Below, one piece after another: positions 1 through 27,724 of a stretch of DNA of 32,730 bases (position 1 is the first letter of the stretch; each line of letters starts with the position of its first letter). This DNA comes from Bigelowiella natans CCMP2755 (taxonomy: Eukaryota > Protista > Cercozoa). The stretch spans positions 1-32,730 of the forward strand of contig ADNK01003170.1 in assembly GCA_000320545.1 (NCBI GenBank). Direction: 5' to 3'. The notes beneath the pieces are model-generated. The model saw only the letters and a program-made list of their open reading frames with translations, searched no databases and had not been told where the DNA came from. The translations under genes and the position numbers were made by a program.

Positions 1-130
1 GAGAGAGAGAGAGAGAGAGAGCGAAAGAGAGAGAGTGATAGCTATTAGTGTTATTGAGAATATGATAAGTGATAATGATGATAATGATGATGATGATGAT
101 GAGGAGGAGGAGGGTGATGTTCTTCTTTAC

Positions 131-322
131 CGTTGAAATAATAAGTACACTGCGACGACTCATCGACAAATCGTACCCACGGTGTAGTAGTAGTACTCTC
201 AGCTGCTGCACTACCACCTTTTGCTACAACAGCAATATCATCATTAGCAGTATCATAGAGAGATAGATACAGAGACACGAAATTCACTTACTGAACACCG
301 ACTTTCAGGATATGATCATAAC

Positions 323-354
<32 letters not shown>

Positions 355-586
355 GAATGATCATGATTATGATGATAATTGGGAAGAAGAAGAAGAAGAA
401 GAAGAAGAAGAAGAAGAAGAAGAAACATCGTGATATTATCGATAATACTACTTTTCATTATTGATAGTGCTACTAACATAATACAACTACCCTTTTGTCC
501 TTCTACTGTCTGCTCTTGCTGTTTCTGCTGCTGGCTGCTGAAAAACGACCCGCCCTCACCAGAAATCTTACAATGTACACACACAA

Positions 587-8952: not shown

Positions 8953-10513
8953 TTATAACGACGATTGGATTGACTCTTTGGTTTCATTGTCATCATCCAT
9001 TACAAAAATCTTGTGGGGATTCATGATGAACTTAGGATCCAACGCCTTCTTAATGCTGCGCTGCAGATTAATGTGAGTTTCTCCGTGCTCGAGGCATATG
9101 TGATCCCGCTTGCCGATGCCAACTCCGTGTTCCCCAGACACTGCACCACCAAACCTCACTGTTCTTTGAATTAACCGTTTTTCCGCATCCTTGAACAGAC
9201 CTTTTTCATCATCTTGATATGGAACATTACAATGGAAGTTTCCATCGGCAATATGCGCACAAATAAGGCATGGAAGGTTAATTTTTTTGAAATCTTCCTC
9301 AGTTTCTGCAACACATTGAGCAAGATGACTCACTGGGACGCACACGTCAGTAGAATAATTTTTATCTATCTTCTTCTTATTCATCGTCAGCTTTCTATAT
9401 TTGACCACGGACCAGTAGCATCCCCTCCTCGCTCCCCATATTTTATCAATCTCTTTTTCCTTCTCCGAATACTGGGTTCCTCTGACTCCAAATTTCATCA
9501 ACTCTTGTTTGATCCTTTCCCATTCTCTACGTATAACTTCTATATTATTAGATTGGAATTCGAGGAAGAGCGTTGGATCGCAATCTAGCGTAGTTCCATA
9601 GCACGCGTTGGTTGCTTCAATCATCTCGGCGTTAAGAAGCTCACACCTGGCAAGAGAGCCTCGAGGTAGCTTTAGAATGGAGACAACAGCCTCACAGGCA
9701 GAACGAAGGGATGGTAGCACAGAAACAACACCCGCTCTTTTCCTTTGCAATGGAAACACTCTCGCGCAAATCTCTGTGACTACACCGAGAGTTCCCTCCG
9801 CTCCTATGTAGAGCTGCGTGAGCTCGTATCCTGTTGAGGCCTTACGAACCTTTTGCCTTGTTCGCACAATCTTTCCTTGTGGAGTAACAACAACCAAGGA
9901 AATCACATTTTCCCTTGTTGTTCCATAGCGTATTGTAGATAGCCCAGAGCCTGATGTGGAGACCATCCCACCGAGAGAGGGGTTCGATGCAGGATCCGGA
10001 CCGAAGATTAGCCCATACTTCTTCTTAAGATACTTGTTCAACTCATTTTTATAAACGCCAGCTCCCACGTCAACGTACATGTTCACAGGATCAACCTCGA
10101 TTTTTCGGAGATTTTCCGTGGAGAGAACCACGCCTTTCTCAAGAGGGATGGCCCCTCCCTCAAGTCCGGAGCCGGCGCCCCTTGTCGTAATGGGGATGGT
10201 GTGTTCTGGAAACAATTGAAAGAAGCAACTATTTTAGGATTTTGGATAAAAAATCCAATAGTACTAGTACTTAAAGGTTACCTGAACAGAGCTTAACAAC
10301 TTCCGCTACCTCAACTGTCGAGCTGGGCTTCACAACTACTGCAGGCGTGCACCCTGAGAAAATGCTCCGATCTTTACCATACTTCGTCAGTCCAGCTGTT
10401 AGAACACACTCCTTGGGCTTAGATATGATCTTTTCGAGAAGCCCTATAAATTTGCTAGTTGGCTGGTTGTAAGTCCGCTTGGGAGGACAGGGGGGAGGAG
10501 GATGCTTCTTCAT
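8953..10513 (-). CDS. FAD-linked oxidase, D-lactate dehydrogenase / glycolate oxidase GlcD family
   Basis: Two exons (10513-10282, 10205-8953; intron 10206-10281 GT...AG) join PAVVVKPSSTVEVAEVVKLCS/EHTIPITTRGAGSGLEGG. Motifs FGPDPAS..SLGGMVST, GYELTQLYIGAEGTLGVVT, AHIADGNFH, SGEHGVGIGK, ALDPKFIMNPHK. The start could be 10513 or 10588. Confidence 0.93.
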
Positions 10514-13046: not shown

Positions 13047-14495
13047 TCATTTTTCTTTTCTATCTTTAGAGACACTGGTTTTCAAACGAGCATATAATTC
13101 CGCCGATAAACGACTGTGAAGCTCAGAACAAGCATGGTCAGAAAGGGCGGGAATGTTCTGAAGGATAATTTTTATGCTCTTATTGTCCATTTCTATCTTA
13201 GGGGGGTTGTTTTTAGTGCGCCAGCAGCAGGTGTCAGCAAAATGATATCGTATCGAAAAATAACTGATAATTATTGTAACTAGAGTGATAGCGCATGCTT
13301 TTTTCCGTTCAAGAATAAATTTTATTGCGTCACCTTTCAATAACCACAACCACCAAGTCGTGCTCGAGGAACCTTGGTTTGCACTACTTCTTTCGAAGAT
13401 ACTTCGCTCTTGTGTATCCCCATCTTCTATCCTTCCCATTTCATCCTCAACTCCACTAGGAACACTGAAGTCCCTCCCCTCCTCGTTGCATGGAGGCAGT
13501 TGTTCGTATCGAGATGGTCGCTGTAACATGGCTTCAGTAGCATGACCACATTTGACAAGTAAATCCGCAAGATCATTGTAGCCTACACTAACCATGAAAT
13601 CTTTGTGACTTTCACACAGATCGAATGAAACCGGATGGACTGCCGATACATTAAAGCTGGCCATGTCGGTGTTCTCATCGGTATGGTCGTAGTCGTCGAC
13701 CGAGCGTGTGGCTGAACTTGCAAATATCATGAGGAGCTGCATTGCATACTCTGGGAGGCTATCGAACGATTCTCGCCTTACAATCCTAGAATATCTCCCA
13801 TGTCGCATTAGCGACAGGCCGAGTATTGTTCCGTTATCTCCTGCAAATGCATCTAATGGTAATGATCTTGCAACTCCACCATCGACAAAGAGATCCCCAT
13901 TATAAGATACAGGCCTAAAGAAGAAAGGTATCGCTGAGGAGGCTAAGACAGCTTTTGCCACAGGCATGTCAGTAGCAGAGCGACGATCAAAGAAGGTCAA
14001 GACTCCTGTATTCATATTAACCGCGGTTATTCGGAGCTCTTTCTTCGACAATTCGTACAATTTTCCAAAAGTTACATTAGCAACCCCTGTCTTTCGGAAG
14101 AGCATTCCTTCTACCAGATCTAACAAGGGAGTTCCAGAATACCATCCGAAATTTGCCATTAGCCTGGACACGTCTACGAACACGTTCCCACTTGAATCAA
14201 GGAAGGACTTAAAATCGACCAACCGAAGTTCATCCGCAACCTCTTCAGCTTCATATCCTGCTGCTAATAATGCAGCTCCGATAGAACCCGCACTCGTTCC
14301 CGAAAAACCTTCCATTCCCTGCAGTATCCCTGCATCCTGCAAAGCGCGGACTGCCCCAGAATAGGTTACTCCTCTAACTCCACCTCCCTCTAATGCTAGG
14401 TACTTGTATGGGCCCTTCGCACAGATCTCCGGATCCAACGTAGACCCAGACACCACGTATAAAAATATAAGCAAGGTCACATGCTGTGGCCCCAT
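13047..14495 (-). CDS. Patatin-like phospholipase, intronless, with signal peptide and C-terminal transmembrane segment, 482 aa
   Basis: Oxyanion motif LEGGGVRG, nucleophile GTSAG, ASSAIPFFF, catalytic VDGG; hydrophobic N-terminus VTLLIFLYVVS; TM-like AITLVTIIISYFSI. Confidence 0.93.
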   Translation of the reverse strand: MGPQHVTLLIFLYVVSGSTLDPEICAKGPYKYLALEGGGVRGVTYSGAVRALQDAGILQGMEGFSGTSAGSIGAALLAAGYEAEEVADELRLVDFKSFLDSSGNVFVDVSRLMANFGWYSGTPLLDLVEGMLFRKTGVANVTFGKLYELSKKELRITAVNMNTGVLTFFDRRSATDMPVAKAVLASSAIPFFFRPVSYNGDLFVDGGVARSLPLDAFAGDNGTILGLSLMRHGRYSRIVRRESFDSLPEYAMQLLMIFASSATRSVDDYDHTDENTDMASFNVSAVHPVSFDLCESHKDFMVSVGYNDLADLLVKCGHATEAMLQRPSRYEQLPPCNEEGRDFSVPSGVEDEMGRIEDGDTQERSIFERSSANQGSSSTTWWLWLLKGDAIKFILERKKACAITLVTIIISYFSIRYHFADTCCWRTKNNPPKIEMDNKSIKIILQNIPALSDHACSELHSRLSAELYARLKTSVSKDRKEK

Positions 14496-20823: not shown

Positions 20824-21309
20824 ACTATTTAAATTAAAGAAATGTCGTACTGGTGGTATATGCTCATAGCTAGTTCATCGTTTGTGTGTCAGAAAGCATG
20901 ATTGCGTGTCACTGACTACAACATTAACTAAATATAGACCTCAATGTACGTGCCCGCGTGGACATGATATTCATCGGGATGAAGCGCTCACTGAAAGTTT
21001 CACGTGTGTGGTGTGTCAAGCGCGTGTTCAGGTAACTGTTGAATCGTTTAGTCATTCCAAACAACAAAACGATCCATTACAATGCAATTCTCGCTCATAT
21101 TTAGGTTGCATTTACATGTCATGAATGCGATTGGTTGGCTTGCATAAGTTGTGTTTTTCATTCATCTGAGTGCGATGGAAGTTAATCAGTAAACACATGA
21201 AGCTGAAAAAGGATAGCTTCGCCAACACACCGCTCTAGTAGCAATATTAAACCTTATTTGCAGATGCATATAATGTTGCTACATTCGGTTAACAATAAAT
21301 CAACGCTGA

Positions 21310-21590
21310 AATTTCTCATGATATCATCAACATGTGCGCATCCATGTGTCAATGTCTAGACGTGTCAATGTAACATGCTTGATGACATGTTTCTGGACTT
21401 CATGTGTCCATGCTAGCATGCATGTGTGACAATGCAAGCATGCTAGCATGCTTGCATGATCCGCTGTGAATGATGTCACGTTGCACCTCAGATCTTGAAA
21501 CGACGCTCATGCTAGCATGTTTTCATTCGATCCATGCACTAAAGTGGTGTGTGCATTTCACTGCTTCACTGTGAACATTGCTGCTCAACT
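21310..21590. repeat. Palindrome-rich spacer (CATG/GCTAGC) between convergent genes
   Basis: Perfect 26-bp palindrome atgcaagcatgctagcatgcttgcat at 21432-21457; the 12-mer catgctagcatg occurs at 21409, 21439 and 21508. Confidence 0.85.
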
Positions 21591-21598
21591 GCTCATCG

Positions 21599-23665
21599 TC
21601 ATTTTATGTCGTCACCAAGACATTGATGAGAAATGCTAGCATTGTGCCCCGGATTCAACAAGTAAGGACAACTCTCTAGTGCATCTCGGCAACTCGTCAA
21701 CTCCACCTGGTTGCAATTTCCTAGGTATGATATTCCGGGATCTATGAAGTATTGCACATCTAGATCATCTGGAATGAACAAGCCGCGGAGACCGCAATGC
21801 TGAGGATAACTAGTGATAATCTCATCAGCTTTGCCCATTCCTTGGCTCCCTTTGAGAGTGTTCCCATGGTTGAAAGCCACAACAATGAGCGTGTCGCCGC
21901 GTTTCGTAGCCCATCGGCGACATTGGATATGTGAACGACGATCATACAATTCATGGCTTCCTCCTTCACTTCCTCCAGGAGCTGTCAAACCATTCATCGT
22001 AGTTGATTTCATTTCTAGGCAAGGAGCTTCTATGACACACACTGGAGATAACTGTTCCTTCACACTCCTGCCGCTATGCGTGGAAGATGAAAACGACGAC
22101 GATTTTGTGGCCAGAGCAATGTGGTCTAATATGTGCTTCTTTACATCTTCAACTGTAGATCCGAAGTGCTCCGGAATGTACGGAAGTTTGGTTACGTATG
22201 GGGAATCTGGATATGCTTGTTGTTCAAGTTTGGTGAGTCCTAAGATATCTCGGGAGATATTTGGGCCAGAGAATACCCACAACGACTCGGCACGAATCTG
22301 ATGAGCGTGAAATACTTGCTGCCCAGGAACAAACGAGCCATCATATCTATGTGTGTGCGAGTACCAAAATACAGATGACTTTTGAGGGGGTATTCCATAC
22401 ACGAACGGGCCATGCCTCTGAGCTGGAGCACCAAACGATATCTTGGCACCCACTCCCTTGTGTGGCCTCTGTCGTGTCCAAGCGATCGCAATTTCCATGT
22501 AGTATTCTATTGCTGGGGATCCTTTCGGTCTTACATGATTGAGAACAAAATCTACATATAGCGGGCTCGTAATACGATGTGCTACGCCATCTGGAAGCAT
22601 GCGCACAAGACAGTTTATCCCACCATGGGCACTGTGGCATTCAGAATCTCCATGCACTTCAATAATCGGGGCAACCCATGATTTTCGGGTGTGTATGTGG
22701 AAGTGGTGGATATGAATTGGAGGATAGCCTAAAGGTTCTCCGTTTTTATCCGTAGGAAAGGTTGCAGAGCCTACCACGAAAAGCTCTCCTCCATTGGCTT
22801 TGATTTCTTTGCTGAGTAAACCAATGTCCTTAATGTAACTCGCTACAGACCAATCATAGCCAGCTATTCCGGGGATTAGACCCACACGTTCAATTGTCCA
22901 ATGTATGGTGTTGTTGCCCCCGTTGTATCTATTATCTCGTGACGAGGAGGAGGAAGAGGAGGAAGAGGAGGAGGAGGAGGACTCACCTGTTCCTCCAAGA
23001 TCGCATCGTTGCCTTGACATCCTTGAGTGCTGAATATCATCGACAGGTATCGCTGGACAGTGATTAGGAGGCTGACACAAACCCCAATAATGGTAGTTGT
23101 GACTATTGTAGGCTTTATCGTTTGAATAATGAACAAGTTTCGAGTGATGGCCCTTTTGGGTAGTCCATCTACAATTTGACCGAAGATCAAAATACGCCCT
23201 TGCACTGGAAAAATTTGTGTCACCGCCATTTACCCAAGGTAACCACTCTTGCTCGGTTGCGGGATCTTTGATTCCGGCCGCGTTGGTAAGACGTACTATC
23301 TCAGCTGTTGGGCGGTCGCTAAATATCTTACAATCGATTTTCATTCCAGCAGCTTTCTCATTTTGCAAAGGCGAATTCACCATCGAACCCAGTAATATTC
23401 CGAGAATTATGAGAAATGGGAAGAAAGGGATGACTTTCGATGCCATAGACATGCAATTTACCTCACAGCGCCATCTCCTTAAGATTCTATTCGAAGAAGG
23501 TGATGCTTCTTTTTTGTGCAGCGCTTTCTTCTCGCTGAGTGATTTACCGAGACTCTTTTTTGGAGAAAGGTTTTCCCCCGGTGATATGGATGATGAATTC
23601 ACAACAGTGCTCAAAAGAACGTTATTTTCCGAGTCATCGCTTTCTATGTCTACTAAATCGCTCAT
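21599..23665 (-). CDS. Intronless 688-aa type II membrane protein; candidate PHM/DBH-fold (copper type II monooxygenase-like) protein
   Basis: Long ORF with a single TM (IPFFPFLIILGILLGSMV) and ordered motifs HIHHFHIH, LPDGVAHRI..FVLNH, YGIPPQKSSV, VFHAHQ, KRGDTLIV, QHCGL that parallel the PHM catalytic core. The coding status is clear; the family assignment is by eye. Confidence 0.6.
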   Translation of the reverse strand: MSDLVDIESDDSENNVLLSTVVNSSSISPGENLSPKKSLGKSLSEKKALHKKEASPSSNRILRRWRCEVNCMSMASKVIPFFPFLIILGILLGSMVNSPLQNEKAAGMKIDCKIFSDRPTAEIVRLTNAAGIKDPATEQEWLPWVNGGDTNFSSARAYFDLRSNCRWTTQKGHHSKLVHYSNDKAYNSHNYHYWGLCQPPNHCPAIPVDDIQHSRMSRQRCDLGGTGESSSSSSSSSSSSSSRDNRYNGGNNTIHWTIERVGLIPGIAGYDWSVASYIKDIGLLSKEIKANGGELFVVGSATFPTDKNGEPLGYPPIHIHHFHIHTRKSWVAPIIEVHGDSECHSAHGGINCLVRMLPDGVAHRITSPLYVDFVLNHVRPKGSPAIEYYMEIAIAWTRQRPHKGVGAKISFGAPAQRHGPFVYGIPPQKSSVFWYSHTHRYDGSFVPGQQVFHAHQIRAESLWVFSGPNISRDILGLTKLEQQAYPDSPYVTKLPYIPEHFGSTVEDVKKHILDHIALATKSSSFSSSTHSGRSVKEQLSPVCVIEAPCLEMKSTTMNGLTAPGGSEGGSHELYDRRSHIQCRRWATKRGDTLIVVAFNHGNTLKGSQGMGKADEIITSYPQHCGLRGLFIPDDLDVQYFIDPGISYLGNCNQVELTSCRDALESCPYLLNPGHNASISHQCLGDDIK

Positions 23666-24664
23666 TGAGTTGACACTCCTTATCTCATGGGTGGTGATCT
23701 ATATTCATATTGTATACAAGAGGGCACTGCAAATTATAACCAGAATTTCTTCCAACCAAGAGGCGCGATTTAAGCAATGGTAATCAAGTGTAGTTTAGCA
23801 CTTCGGAGGCTCGAGATATACATATCCCATCCACCCACCATTTCGAATGGGGCACAATGGCGTTACAATATTTCCGAGGGATCACTCGAGATCAGTATCC
23901 AAGAAACTCGAATGCCAGTCACTACCGGCAATCCACTAAAACAAATTTGGAGGCAACCTCGAGAGTCTCTCCGTAATTACCAGAGGTGACTACGAAGTCA
24001 AACAAAGAGAGCATGCAAAAGGACCGTAATTGTACCGTTTCCCGATATTGGTACCAACGTCGATTAATTTTCATGAGTCTAAAAATTAATGGGAATTTTC
24101 TCCTGCGACAAAGGAAATGTCCGGAGATGCTTGCCTAGTCTTCCTCGCAAGGGCTCGACTCTCTCCCAGAATATCCAGCGCTTCAAAGCGTTCTGCATTA
24201 GGTTGTTTCTGTCATAAAGTAACTACAAGTTGTTGTCTCAGTGAATAAAGGGATTGATTTTTGCCCTAATCGAAAGCAGGATCGACTGTAGATAGGAAAA
24301 ACGTACTTTGATGAGACCTTAAAGCCATCAGGGCTGTGGCTGATTTTGTACCATTTGGACACGAAAGTAGCGTCTGTCCCGTGCTTCAATCTCTCTTAAT
24401 TCTCTTTTTGCGCAATGACCTAAAACGGCGGTGGATTTTTTCACCACAGAATTGCGGAAGCGGTGGCGACAAAGGTGATCTCAGTGTATTCTTCCAACGC
24501 GAACGCAGCTTCCATGTGAAAATGTCCTGCAGTTCCATGTTTTTCTGAAGATTTCCTCTGCCCAAGGCACTAGGAGTTGGGGCTTGATAACACACAGCAG
24601 CCTTTTTACCACACATCTGTACCATCGAAGCAGCAGCCATAGATTTCATTCGCCACAAGTAACT

Positions 24665-27600
24665 ATGCCCTCAAGTGAAATGCAAACTATTCCCTCAAGC
24701 GGCCCTTCGAGCACCCTGAAATCTAAGTCAACATTAGCACAGCAAGTAGCTCAGCAATATGATCTACGATCGCTTAACGCTAAAAGTCTCGAGAGCGAGG
24801 CGAAAGTAGGCCTCGGTGCTGCAGCATCGGTTCTCAAGAAAAACTTTTCCAACGACGCAAGGAAATTGTCCATTGCTCTTGTGGAGTGTGTCGAGCTTCG
24901 GGATATGCTGTTTCATCTTTCTCGCCTACCTGTATTCTCCGGCGAGTTTGCAAAAGCATTCGCACACGATCTCGATGCGCTCGTTTGCCTCAAGAAATTG
25001 AAATACTTTTACAATCTTCCCATGGGAACGGTGAGTGCTTGTTTAGCGAAACTCGCTCAAAGATATACGAGCAAGGAGGACTGTAAGACATGGGAAAAGT
25101 ACATGTTTGCCGTGTACGATAATCAAGAATTATGTGTCAAAGGAATATTCCGCTTCATTGCGCTTGCTAGTAAGAGTGCCTCGCAGTACAAATCTCACGC
25201 AGATAGCCTCGAAAAGCTTGACCCTCATGGGGTGTATCCAACATCAATCTACAGGCAGTGCTACGCAACCACACTGTCCAATGAAGATGCTTCGAAAATC
25301 GAGTCTGTGATGAGTACCACGATTACCACCTCCATCAAGATAAAGACTGGGCTTTTGAAGAAGGAAAGTCCAGAGCTTCGCGACATATACAAGCCACTCG
25401 GCAGGTGTGTAGCAGTCATCGATAGGCAAGTTGACGGGATATACGGCAAGCAGATAGAAGACTACTTCAAGGCACACAATATTTCCCTTGTGAAGTTGGT
25501 CTATGGGGCTATGGAGAAGGATAAAGACATCAGCTCTGTCGAGAAGATACTCATTGACTTCAAGCGGGCAGGTGTAGCACGATGCGAGCCTGTTTTGATT
25601 GTCGGAGGCGGTGTGATCACTGACCTCGGAGGTTTCGCCTCTGCTCTGTATCATCGTAACACACCATACGTGATGCTATGCACGTCAATTGTGTCTGGTA
25701 TTGACGCTGGGCCATCGCCTCGAACATGCGCGGATGGTTATGGGTACAAAAACATCTACGGTGCCTACCACCCTCCTGTCGTAACCTTGACCGACCGTGC
25801 TTTCTTCAAGACGCTCCATGAAGGATGGGTGCGACACGGTGAGTGCCAGAGTAGTTGTGTGTATGTGTGAGAGTGTGTGTTTGATGCCTTCCCAAAGTTG
25901 ATGAGCTCCGAATTCATGTGAAAGTGGTGATGTAGTTGATAGATAGCCAGCCAATAGAAGATGAATCATCAGCAAACGTGAGAGTAGTAGTTGCATAAAT
26001 CTCCTCCTCATGTAGCTTTGCCCTGCTGCAGGTATTGCTGAGATCATTAAAATGGCTGTCGTGAAAGACATGTCGTTATTCGAGCTATTGGAGAAGGCAG
26101 GTCCCAAGCTCATCCGTACCAAGTTTGGCACGGAGAATCCTGAAGACAGCGAGTATGGCTCAATGTGTGACGTCATCATCGGAAAGGCTATGGAGGGATA
26201 CGTTCGTGCTGAGTACGGCAACCTGTGGGAAACTCATCAATGCAGGCCTCATGCATATGGGCACACGTGGAGTCCTGGCTACGAGATTCCATCTGGGATG
26301 CTGCACGGGCATGCTGTCGGCACTTGCATGGGATACGGAGCATACTTGGCCTATGATCAGGGCTTCATCACAGAGGAGAAGTTTCATCGTATTATGAAGC
26401 TAATCAGTGATATGGAGCTTACTCTGTACCATCCTATCATGGACAATCACGATCAGATCTGGGCAGCACAGAAAAAGGTATTTTATTTCACTCTTTGTGG
26501 GCGAAGAAGAGGTGGTGGGGATATCCTAATGTAGGTGTTTTGACGAATGGCACTAAAACGTTACGTTAACAGCAGACGCAAGCTTGAATCAATCAAAACA
26601 GCTGATCGTTCAAACTATTTTTTGATGCTTAGGTCACTGAGAAGAGGGGAGGCAACCTCTGCGCTCCAGTGCCCCGCGGCGAGATCGGCCTGTGCGGATA
26701 CATAAACGACGTTGATGAGAAGCGACTGAGAAGGACCCTGGACGAGTACAAGCAGATCTGCAAGAAGTACCCTCGCGCTGGGCTTGGCGTTGATATGCAC
26801 TGTGTGGATGTTGGCTTAGAGCCAGCAGGTACCGTAGGAATGAGGGAAACCGAATCCTTGGAGCAGCAGCAGCAGGGGGGGGAGGACTCTAAGGCGACAG
26901 TCGGCCAGAAGGGGGGCGAGCAGACCAAAGATCTTTCCTATAATGAATGGATTAAGACTTGCCAAGAGTCCCGCACACACGCACACAACGAGCGACTGGG
27001 AGGCAAGGCCATCGAGCTCGGGGCTGAGAAGCCTCCTGCCTTCAACAAGGACACGCTCTTTCACCCTACCGTTGAGGCGTATGCCACCGCTCATACAACC
27101 AAAGCCTCGAAGGACGTTGCCCGCATCTCAGAAGTGACCAAGGAAAAGAAGATGTTTGCGCCTTGCATGGTAGGGCAGCTCGAGGGGCAGTTCCTGAAGA
27201 TGATGGTTCAGATGCAAAGAGCCAACACAGTGTTGGACATCGGCACCTTCACTGGGTACTCGGCGCTCTCATTTGCGGAGGGGCTGGGTAAAGACGGGAA
27301 GGTAGTCACAATTGAAAACGACGCTAAGATCGCCGAGACCGCGGACGGGTTGTTCAAAGCAAGCTCTGTGGCTGATAAGATTGAGCTCCTGGTAGGCGAT
27401 GCTGTCCAGCACATGCAAAAACTCCTTCAACAGGGAAAGAAGTTTGATTTGATCTTCCTTGACGCCGACAAAGCAAACTACGTCAAGTATTACGAGATTG
27501 CGATGCAAGGACTCCTCAACAAAGACGGCTTCATAATGGCGGATAACTCCCTGTGCGCCCTTGTTTACCGTGAGGGAGATGCTCGTAGAGACCGCCTGCA

Positions 27601-27724
27601 CGAATTTAATGAACTTGTCAGCAAAGACCCACGTGTGGAGCAAGTTTGCCTTACCCTCCGGGAAGGAGTCACCATTATCCGCCCTACGCCTGAATTCTGG
27701 GCCTCAACCGCAAACAAGCAATGA
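24665..27724 (+). CDS. mysAB: Fused demethyl-4-deoxygadusol synthase (sedoheptulose-7-phosphate cyclase, MysA) + O-methyltransferase (MysB), 903 aa; mycosporine-like amino acid precursor synthesis
   Basis: join(24665..25838,26032..26477,26633..27724), canonical and in frame (2712 nt). Cyclase motifs EPVLIVGGGVITDLGG, GIDAG, KNIYGAYHPP, RHG/IAEIIKMAVV, AYGHTWSP, LHGHAV, YPRAGLGVD. After a Gln-rich linker come OMT motifs MVGQLEGQFLKM, VLDIGTFTGYSAL, FDLIFLDADKANY, DPRVEQVCLTLREGVTII. Confidence 0.93.

Follow-up and report, generated by a model that had tools for sequence, protein, structure and literature searches.

The window analysed here is a 32,730-nucleotide stretch of DNA from Bigelowiella natans CCMP2755 (contig ADNK01003170.1, forward strand), and the gene in question lies on its minus strand at 21599-23665. 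This gene probably encodes a type II membrane-anchored copper oxidoreductase with the fold known from peptidylglycine alpha-hydroxylating monooxygenase (PHM), in which the oxygen-activating metal site would be built from three histidines (His3); the metal, the redox role and the substrate are what we infer. The protein belongs to a large unannotated eukaryotic family with a PHM-type fold, which is best placed as a distant sister of SURNod19. Both PHM, from peptide amidation, and dopamine beta-hydroxylase (DBH), which produces noradrenaline, are copper enzymes. In PHM, DBH and tyramine beta-monooxygenase, it has long been asked what the methionine at the oxygen-activating site (CuM) does, and a natural, always-His family of hundreds of lineages with a rebuilt partner site would offer a direct route to the role of the thioether and to the changes that compensate for its loss. 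Marine protists of ecological importance have more than 700 clusters of such 'hypothetical' proteins; the reading provides a structural and mechanistic hypothesis for them and ties them to the plant SURNod19 family, itself still uncharacterised.

AlphaFold2 was used with a 52-sequence alignment to model the catalytic region, residues 256-688 (subtracting 255 from the full numbering gives the domain numbering). The model consists of two beta-sandwiches plus a helical insertion (predicted local distance difference test score, pLDDT, 83.7; predicted template modelling score, pTM, 0.86). The first 29 PDB matches returned by Foldseek were all PHM or DBH (best E 7.5e-8), and structural alignment with VIA-align gave Z 17.6 against PHM 6ala (root-mean-square deviation, rmsd, 3.1 A over 245 residues) and Z 17.1 against DBH 4zel_A. 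When 48,161 representative chains were compared exhaustively, only PHM and DBH stood above Z 8; PNGase F reached about 8 (7.8-8.1) with 3-4% identity, and viral double-jelly-roll capsid proteins 8 or less. The nearest clusters in the ESM Atlas were SURNod19 (PF07712) and bacterial proteins partly annotated as Cu2_monoox_C. These comparisons support a two-domain PHM beta-sandwich fold for the predicted structure. The sequence-only reading of this DNA had proposed a PHM-fold protein and had tied that proposal to a two-domain jelly roll of the PHM or PNGase F kind; two beta-sandwiches with PHM and DBH alone above background agree with the proposal, and at Z 7.8-8.1 the PNGase F-like assignment falls away.

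Residue conservation was counted in 159 family representatives aligned to the family hidden Markov model (HMM), in full-protein numbering. The CuM methionine is Met314 in PHM and Met487 in DBH (PMC12164859, PMC4846438). A second AlphaFold2 model, which ends three residues past His623 (domain residues 1-371, pLDDT 87.6), was aligned by VIA-align over 1..371 with PHM 63..317 in 25/25 PHM entries and with DBH 213..490. Because Met314 and Met487 lie exactly three residues before these ends, His623 coincides with each of the two methionines, provided that no gap falls within the final three residues. In the HMM alignment, residue 623 is His in 120 of 121 representatives, while residue 622 is Gln in 71 and Met in 22, and residue 624, a Cys here, is never conserved (T, S, L or I in the family). 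The proposal from sequence had been that a PHM-type EMC became QHC, with its His superposing on Met314. The substitution of His for Met agrees with the shortened model and with the family alignment; the Cys has to be dropped, and the motif is QH or, in 22/121, MH. The PHM ligand set of His-x-His plus Met is thus represented by its HxH part, with His at the Met position. Judged from the models and the alignment, the placement of His623 (Q622-H623, 21797..21802) at the CuM methionine position, giving a putative His3 site with H453 and H455 (22301..22309, taken as PHM H242/H244), is supported.

The histidines of the two sites are conserved throughout the family. Seven histidines are 93-99% conserved, with the HH pair, HxH and His623 at about 99%, and H318, H323 and H338, together with D340, at 93-96%; homologues thus bear out the expected retention of these residues. 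The HH pair, H320 and H321 (153/154 each; taken as PHM H107/H108), sits in an HxHHxH strand at 22697..22714 with H318 (144/154) and H323 (143/154), just behind two invariant prolines, P315 and P316 (154/154 each). The HGDSEC motif at 22637..22654 contributes H338 and D340 (150/157 each) and C343, which like C352 is conserved in 153/157, and it aligns with the invariant HNSGFC of SURNod19. In the second site, H453 is found in 133/139 and H455 in 138/139. Local hhalign comparisons, run against 3 SURNod19 sequences and 18 bacterial PHM-like proteins and serving as corroboration only, are in line with these assignments. HH fell on HH in both cases, though in weak alignments (E 0.08 with the bacterial PHM-like proteins, 0.02 with SURNod19), HxH fell on the HxH of SURNod19 and PHM-like proteins in three separate runs, and LPDG-VAHRI on the PHM-like 'P.G.g.r' segment. 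Global hhalign alignments were discarded as meaningless end overlaps.

The electron-transfer site (CuH) of PHM comprises H107, H108 and H172. The HH pair of this set is kept in 153/154 and the third His is not. The SURNod19 segment 'VDLHAIDLR' aligns in hhalign with 'VD.[ED]LNDVR' of the family, which places the H172 equivalent at position 374, and the PHM-like alignment instead puts it at 378. With either placement the strand holds no conserved His in the family alignment, so an equivalent of PHM H172 is absent and the first site is remodelled. The sequence-only reading had taken the His of 'FVLNH' as a CuH equivalent, and this assignment has to be given up. That residue, H377, belongs to the N-[D/H]-V-R motif (residues 376-379, 22529..22540), which reads NHVR here, and among 156 sequences, counting the window protein beside 155 representatives, only the window protein has His there. 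The family has Asp at 377 in 152/155, next to N376 (140/155) and R379 (152/155), and at codon 377 three transcript contig sets agree with the window sequence. Residue 437, His in the window protein, is not conserved either. The companion suggestion, that the added histidines of HxHHxH and HGDSEC remodel the first site, has fared better: H318, H323 and H338, with D340, are likely contributors, and a carboxylate at 374 is possibly another.

A number of observations weigh against this reading and need to be set beside it. When the protein and the 52-sequence profile were searched against Pfam, NCBIfam and PDB sequences, only low-complexity or chance matches came back: at E<=10 there was no Pfam match for the protein or any of the 52 relatives, and neither protein nor profile had a PDB sequence match. 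Similarly, a genome-wide scan of the host assembly (G000; 91 Mb, 3736 contigs, of which the window is C567) with PF01082 and PF03712 left the window gene untouched. The local hhalign probabilities were 0.3-29% and give no confident sequence link to SURNod19 or the PHM-like proteins. The family HMM (A3) had no match in five Bacteroidota genomes with PF03712, which has little bearing on bacteria generally. At the first site, position 374 is E in 66 and D in 46 representatives and Val in the window protein. At the second site, the equivalence of His623 and Met314 comes from end-of-alignment positions and presumes that the last three residues carry no gap. His3 sites in other folds also bind Zn, Fe, Ni or Mn. 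Further, the engineered PHM variant M314H binds two coppers and has at most ~5% of its activity left (PMC12164859), so that a His3 site is not simply interchangeable in PHM chemistry. This variant resembles the family in having the His3 ligand set at its M site; however, it is a laboratory mutant, whereas the family has acquired its His naturally, keeps it without variation in >100 lineages and combines it with a remodelled H site.

A word-index search found three relatives of the window protein, and an exhaustive HMM search started from these three collected 771 clusters at E<=1e-3, of which 409 reached E<=1e-10. The named members that were looked up are all 'hypothetical' or 'uncharacterized'. 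They come from Aureococcus, Prymnesium, Pinguiococcus, Chloropicon, Mucochytrium quahogii, Coscinodiscus, Pirum gemmata and Cymbomonas, so that stramenopiles, haptophytes, green algae, rhizarians (chlorarachniophytes) and one holozoan (an ichthyosporean) are all represented in the family. Our searches found no description of the family in the literature. An uncharacterised subfamily had been suspected from the window sequence, and 771 clusters with no Pfam model and no functional name among the members looked up are what such a subfamily would look like.

Among known families, SURNod19/MtN19 (PF07712) is the nearest ESM Atlas cluster both by features (0.92) and by shape (template modelling score, TM, 0.70 by the SURNod19 model). 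The two have in common an H-x4-C motif after the HH strand (HGDSEC/HNSGFC) and a VD....D.R motif, and of the hhalign results, the one with SURNod19 was the best (E 6e-4 over the C-terminal part). In alignment A4, SURNod19 carries the full PHM ligand set, namely H83/H84, H146, H278/H280 and M359 (in GVMGY), whereas in the family His stands in for Met, the third His is missing and the HH pair is part of HxHHxH. Neither the window protein nor the 52 relatives match PF07712 at E<=10, and the host assembly holds separate SURNod19 genes; the family is therefore placed as a sister of SURNod19 and not as a member. The true SURNod19 genes of the host score 78-128 bits with PF07712 and keep the PHM-type pattern of HH, H, HxH and Met. 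There are two of these intron-containing genes, C1471:12150-13379 and C3409:7407-8925 (L003-L007), and one of them is 97% identical to the Bigelowiella natans model Bigna1/89912. A search for SURNod19 loci in bacterial genomes found nothing, and neither did the SURNod19 profile against the PDB. A weak PF03712 match elsewhere in the host assembly (L009) was rejected as a protein kinase.

With PHM (PF01082 + PF03712), the family shares a secretory-pathway location and a core of two beta-sandwich domains (Z 15-17.6, rmsd 3.1-4 A over ~245 residues), the first with His-His and the second with His-x-His, whose order and approximate spacing agree. It differs in having no Pfam match, an invariant His at the Met314 position, no conserved His at the H172 position, and the added H318, H323, H338 and D340. 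The window protein further differs in a 70-residue helical insertion in domain 2 and in its type II anchoring, PHM being type I. The catalytic core is also shared with DBH, tyramine beta-monooxygenase and MOXD1 (4zel_A, Z 17.1), and the model resembles the closed DBH chain A; unlike this group, the window protein has neither a DOMON domain nor a C-terminal dimerisation domain, carries His at the Met487 position and is 10-11% identical in sequence. PHM-like proteins of 460-550 aa are encoded by 19/301 sampled Bacteroidota genomes (L011-L030, G020-G282). In these proteins HH, H, HxH and D-E-M are invariant, and they match DBH and PHM at E 2e-15.

In the mechanism that we propose, the His-His of CuH and the His-x-His of CuM are kept, and invariant His623 replaces the CuM methionine and would form the His3 site. 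The third CuH histidine has no conserved equivalent, and three extra near-invariant histidines (H318, H323, H338) and D340 are present. The protein would probably be an oxidoreductase that depends on copper, in the likeliest case a monooxygenase or an oxidase, anchored as a type II membrane protein in the secretory pathway or at the cell surface. Electrons would come from a lumenal reductant such as ascorbate, and O2 would be activated at the His3 site. By their distance from HxH and H623, columns 451, 625 and 627 should correspond to PHM R240, N316 and Y318, and all three vary in the family (K/Y/W/I, I/H/V/G and R/Y/F). Because the peptide-carboxylate-binding columns vary in this way, a glycine-extended peptide is an unlikely substrate. 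The family-specific motifs Y-D-R-R (574-577) and N-D-V-R (376-379) are candidates for substrate binding on the strength of their conservation; R576 is conserved in 111/125, and the nearby C582 in 120/122.

The same fold and ligands can be read in other ways, depending on how the two sites are disposed and which metal they hold. Both AlphaFold2 models fit closed conformers best (6ala_A, Z 17.6; 4zel_A, Z 17.1), compared with about 15 (~15.2) for open PHM structures and 9.9 for the open DBH chain B. In the closed conformers, namely DBH chain A and 6ala (citrate-containing H108A-PHM), the ligands of both sites approach each other (PMC6123673). The better fit to these conformers leaves room for a coupled dicopper centre of the type-3 kind, in which the domains stay closed and H453/H455/H623 and H320/H321 plus H318, H323 or H338 hold two Cu a few angstroms apart. 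Tyrosinase and haemocyanin have such a pair, whereas in PHM the two coppers are uncoupled and 11 A from each other. Two His3 sites would go well with six or seven conserved histidines, and PHM M314H with bound substrate has a Cu(I)-CO frequency within the haemocyanin range (PMC12164859). However, the conformation of a metal-free AlphaFold2 model is weak evidence. We also know of no type-3 centre on a PHM fold, and such a centre seems to us rather unlikely here. The wider idea that the PHM/DBH scaffold was turned into an all-N/O-ligated dicopper enzyme with His3 at the M site and a remodelled multi-His H site, possibly permanently closed and coupled binuclear, and so into a new class of copper oxygenase or oxidase, is speculative and doubtful. 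If it were true, the family would be a natural experiment on the need of canonical PHM and DBH enzymes for their methionine ligand. Another metal at the His3 site, such as Zn, Fe(II), Ni or Mn, would make the protein a hydrolase or a dioxygenase or give it a structural site. The loss of a soft thioether and the gain of His and of the carboxylate candidates D340, E/D at 374 and D377 would favour harder or borderline metals, His3 sites of other beta-sandwich enzymes, cupins among them, bind Zn, Fe or Ni, and the PHM substrate residues are not conserved. Yet the solved chains above Z 8 (PHM and DBH) are all copper monooxygenases, and the HH and HxH copper ligands are kept at 99%. In addition, the nearest family, SURNod19, retains the full PHM ligand set, and in bean the copper-responsive miR398 targets SURNod19 as well as Cu/Zn-SOD (PMC3882225). 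We therefore consider a metal other than copper unlikely.

That the region is a non-catalytic jelly-roll, such as a lectin or a PNGase-F-like binding module with structural histidines, is scarcely credible: the PHM/PNGase F superfold does include non-metal enzymes and capsid proteins, but Z 17 to PHM and DBH stands against 8 or less to all others, and seven near-invariant histidines at or beside PHM ligand positions are unexpected for a binding module. A role in mycosporine-like amino acid synthesis was considered on account of the neighbouring genes. A dehydroquinate (DHQ)-synthase-like open reading frame (ORF; PF01761, 1.4e-19) starts at 24584 on the plus strand and is followed by an O-methyltransferase (PF01596, 1e-47) at 26669-27724, and by their domains the pair at 24584-27724 look like the DDG-synthase (DDGS) and O-methyltransferase of mycosporine-like amino acid synthesis. 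With the 5' end of the PHM-like gene at ~23875 and the DHQ-synthase-like ORF running from 24584, the arrangement is divergent, and the protein might be a mycosporine tailoring enzyme co-regulated with the head-to-head pair 0.9 kb upstream. However, DDGS exists as a single copy in the host assembly, a paralogue of the gene on contig C2750 has no DDGS neighbour, and the neighbours are unrelated in Aureococcus and on a 25-kb metagenomic contig. The family is also present in a labyrinthulomycete and an ichthyosporean, both heterotrophs, and the protein is predicted to be a lumenal or extracellular type II membrane protein. Word depth in one transcript contig set (X2) was ~1000-2300 on the DDGS/O-methyltransferase pair vs ~27 on the PHM-like gene. 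The tailoring idea was rejected because neither the paralogue nor other taxa show the adjacency, and we regard it as very improbable.

The gene for the putative PHM-fold copper oxidoreductase is intact and transcribed. The ORF listing and the transcript contigs give a complete, intronless, single-exon coding sequence of 688 aa at 21599..23665, with an ATG start and its stop codon at 21599-21601. The contig sets of three runs (X1-X3), each taken from a separate study, cover 21460-23875 with zero joints and zero differences, and the flanks are uncovered in these sets. Coverage confined to 21460-23875 between bare flanks is what transcript assemblies, and not genomic DNA, would show. Raw RNA-seq reads from a further run (X23) lie on the 3' end of the gene and its untranslated region (UTR) at a depth of 3-10 across 21324-21716, with none below 21193. 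The approximate extents of the UTRs are 21300..21598 for the 3' UTR, from the X23 reads, and 23666..23875 for the 5' UTR, where the X1-X3 contigs stop at 23815-23875; no coverage was found at 23944-24467 in the read and contig data. A contig break at 22937-22987 coincides with a poly-Ser repeat, and it is explained by the read-laying program having passed over this 14-residue run as a repeat. The gene is present in exactly two copies in the host assembly. The second copy, C2750:17189-19300 (L002, L035), is a 710-aa open frame 78% identical to the window protein and 99% identical to a complete MMETSP transcript (P0001), and it retains Asp at the NDVR position.

The protein begins with a polar N-terminal tail, presumed cytosolic (residues 1-73, 23447..23665, all features being on the minus strand), which is conserved only in the paralogue P0001. 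The tail precedes the sole hydrophobic segment above threshold in the hydropathy scan, MASKVIPFFPFLIILGILLGSMV (residues 74-96, 23378..23446; Kyte-Doolittle peak 2.48). A single segment behind a 73-aa polar N-terminus fits a type II signal anchor, as had been suggested from the ORF, and an N-terminal or internal hydrophobic segment ahead of the domain is found in 47/126 full-length relatives. A Cys-containing stalk follows (residues 97-255, 22901..23377); it includes the 14-residue poly-Ser run at 22940-22981 and is conserved only in the close relatives P0001 and P0002. The N-terminal, CuH-type beta-sandwich (residues 256-400, 22466..22900; pLDDT mostly >90) aligns with the PHM N-subdomain from PHM residue 63. 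Similarly, the C-terminal, CuM-type beta-sandwich (residues 401-655, 21701..22465), delimited from the AlphaFold2 secondary structure, aligns with the PHM C-subdomain as far as PHM residue 341, and the same secondary structure shows the helical insertion of ~70 residues at 22040-22258. The Cys-rich C-terminal tail with four Cys (residues 656-688, 21602..21700) is modelled at low confidence (pLDDT <50 over domain residues 395-433). Apart from the ligand motifs, RMLPDGVAHRI, IAWTRQRP, YGIPPQKSSV and KRGDTLIV are all present in the order given by the sequence-only reading, as the back-translated coordinates confirm.

Two further ORFs of the window, both on the minus strand, look like ordinary neighbours: an FAD-linked oxidase (PF01565 + PF02913) at 8953-10215 and a patatin-like phospholipase (PF01734) at 13047-14495.

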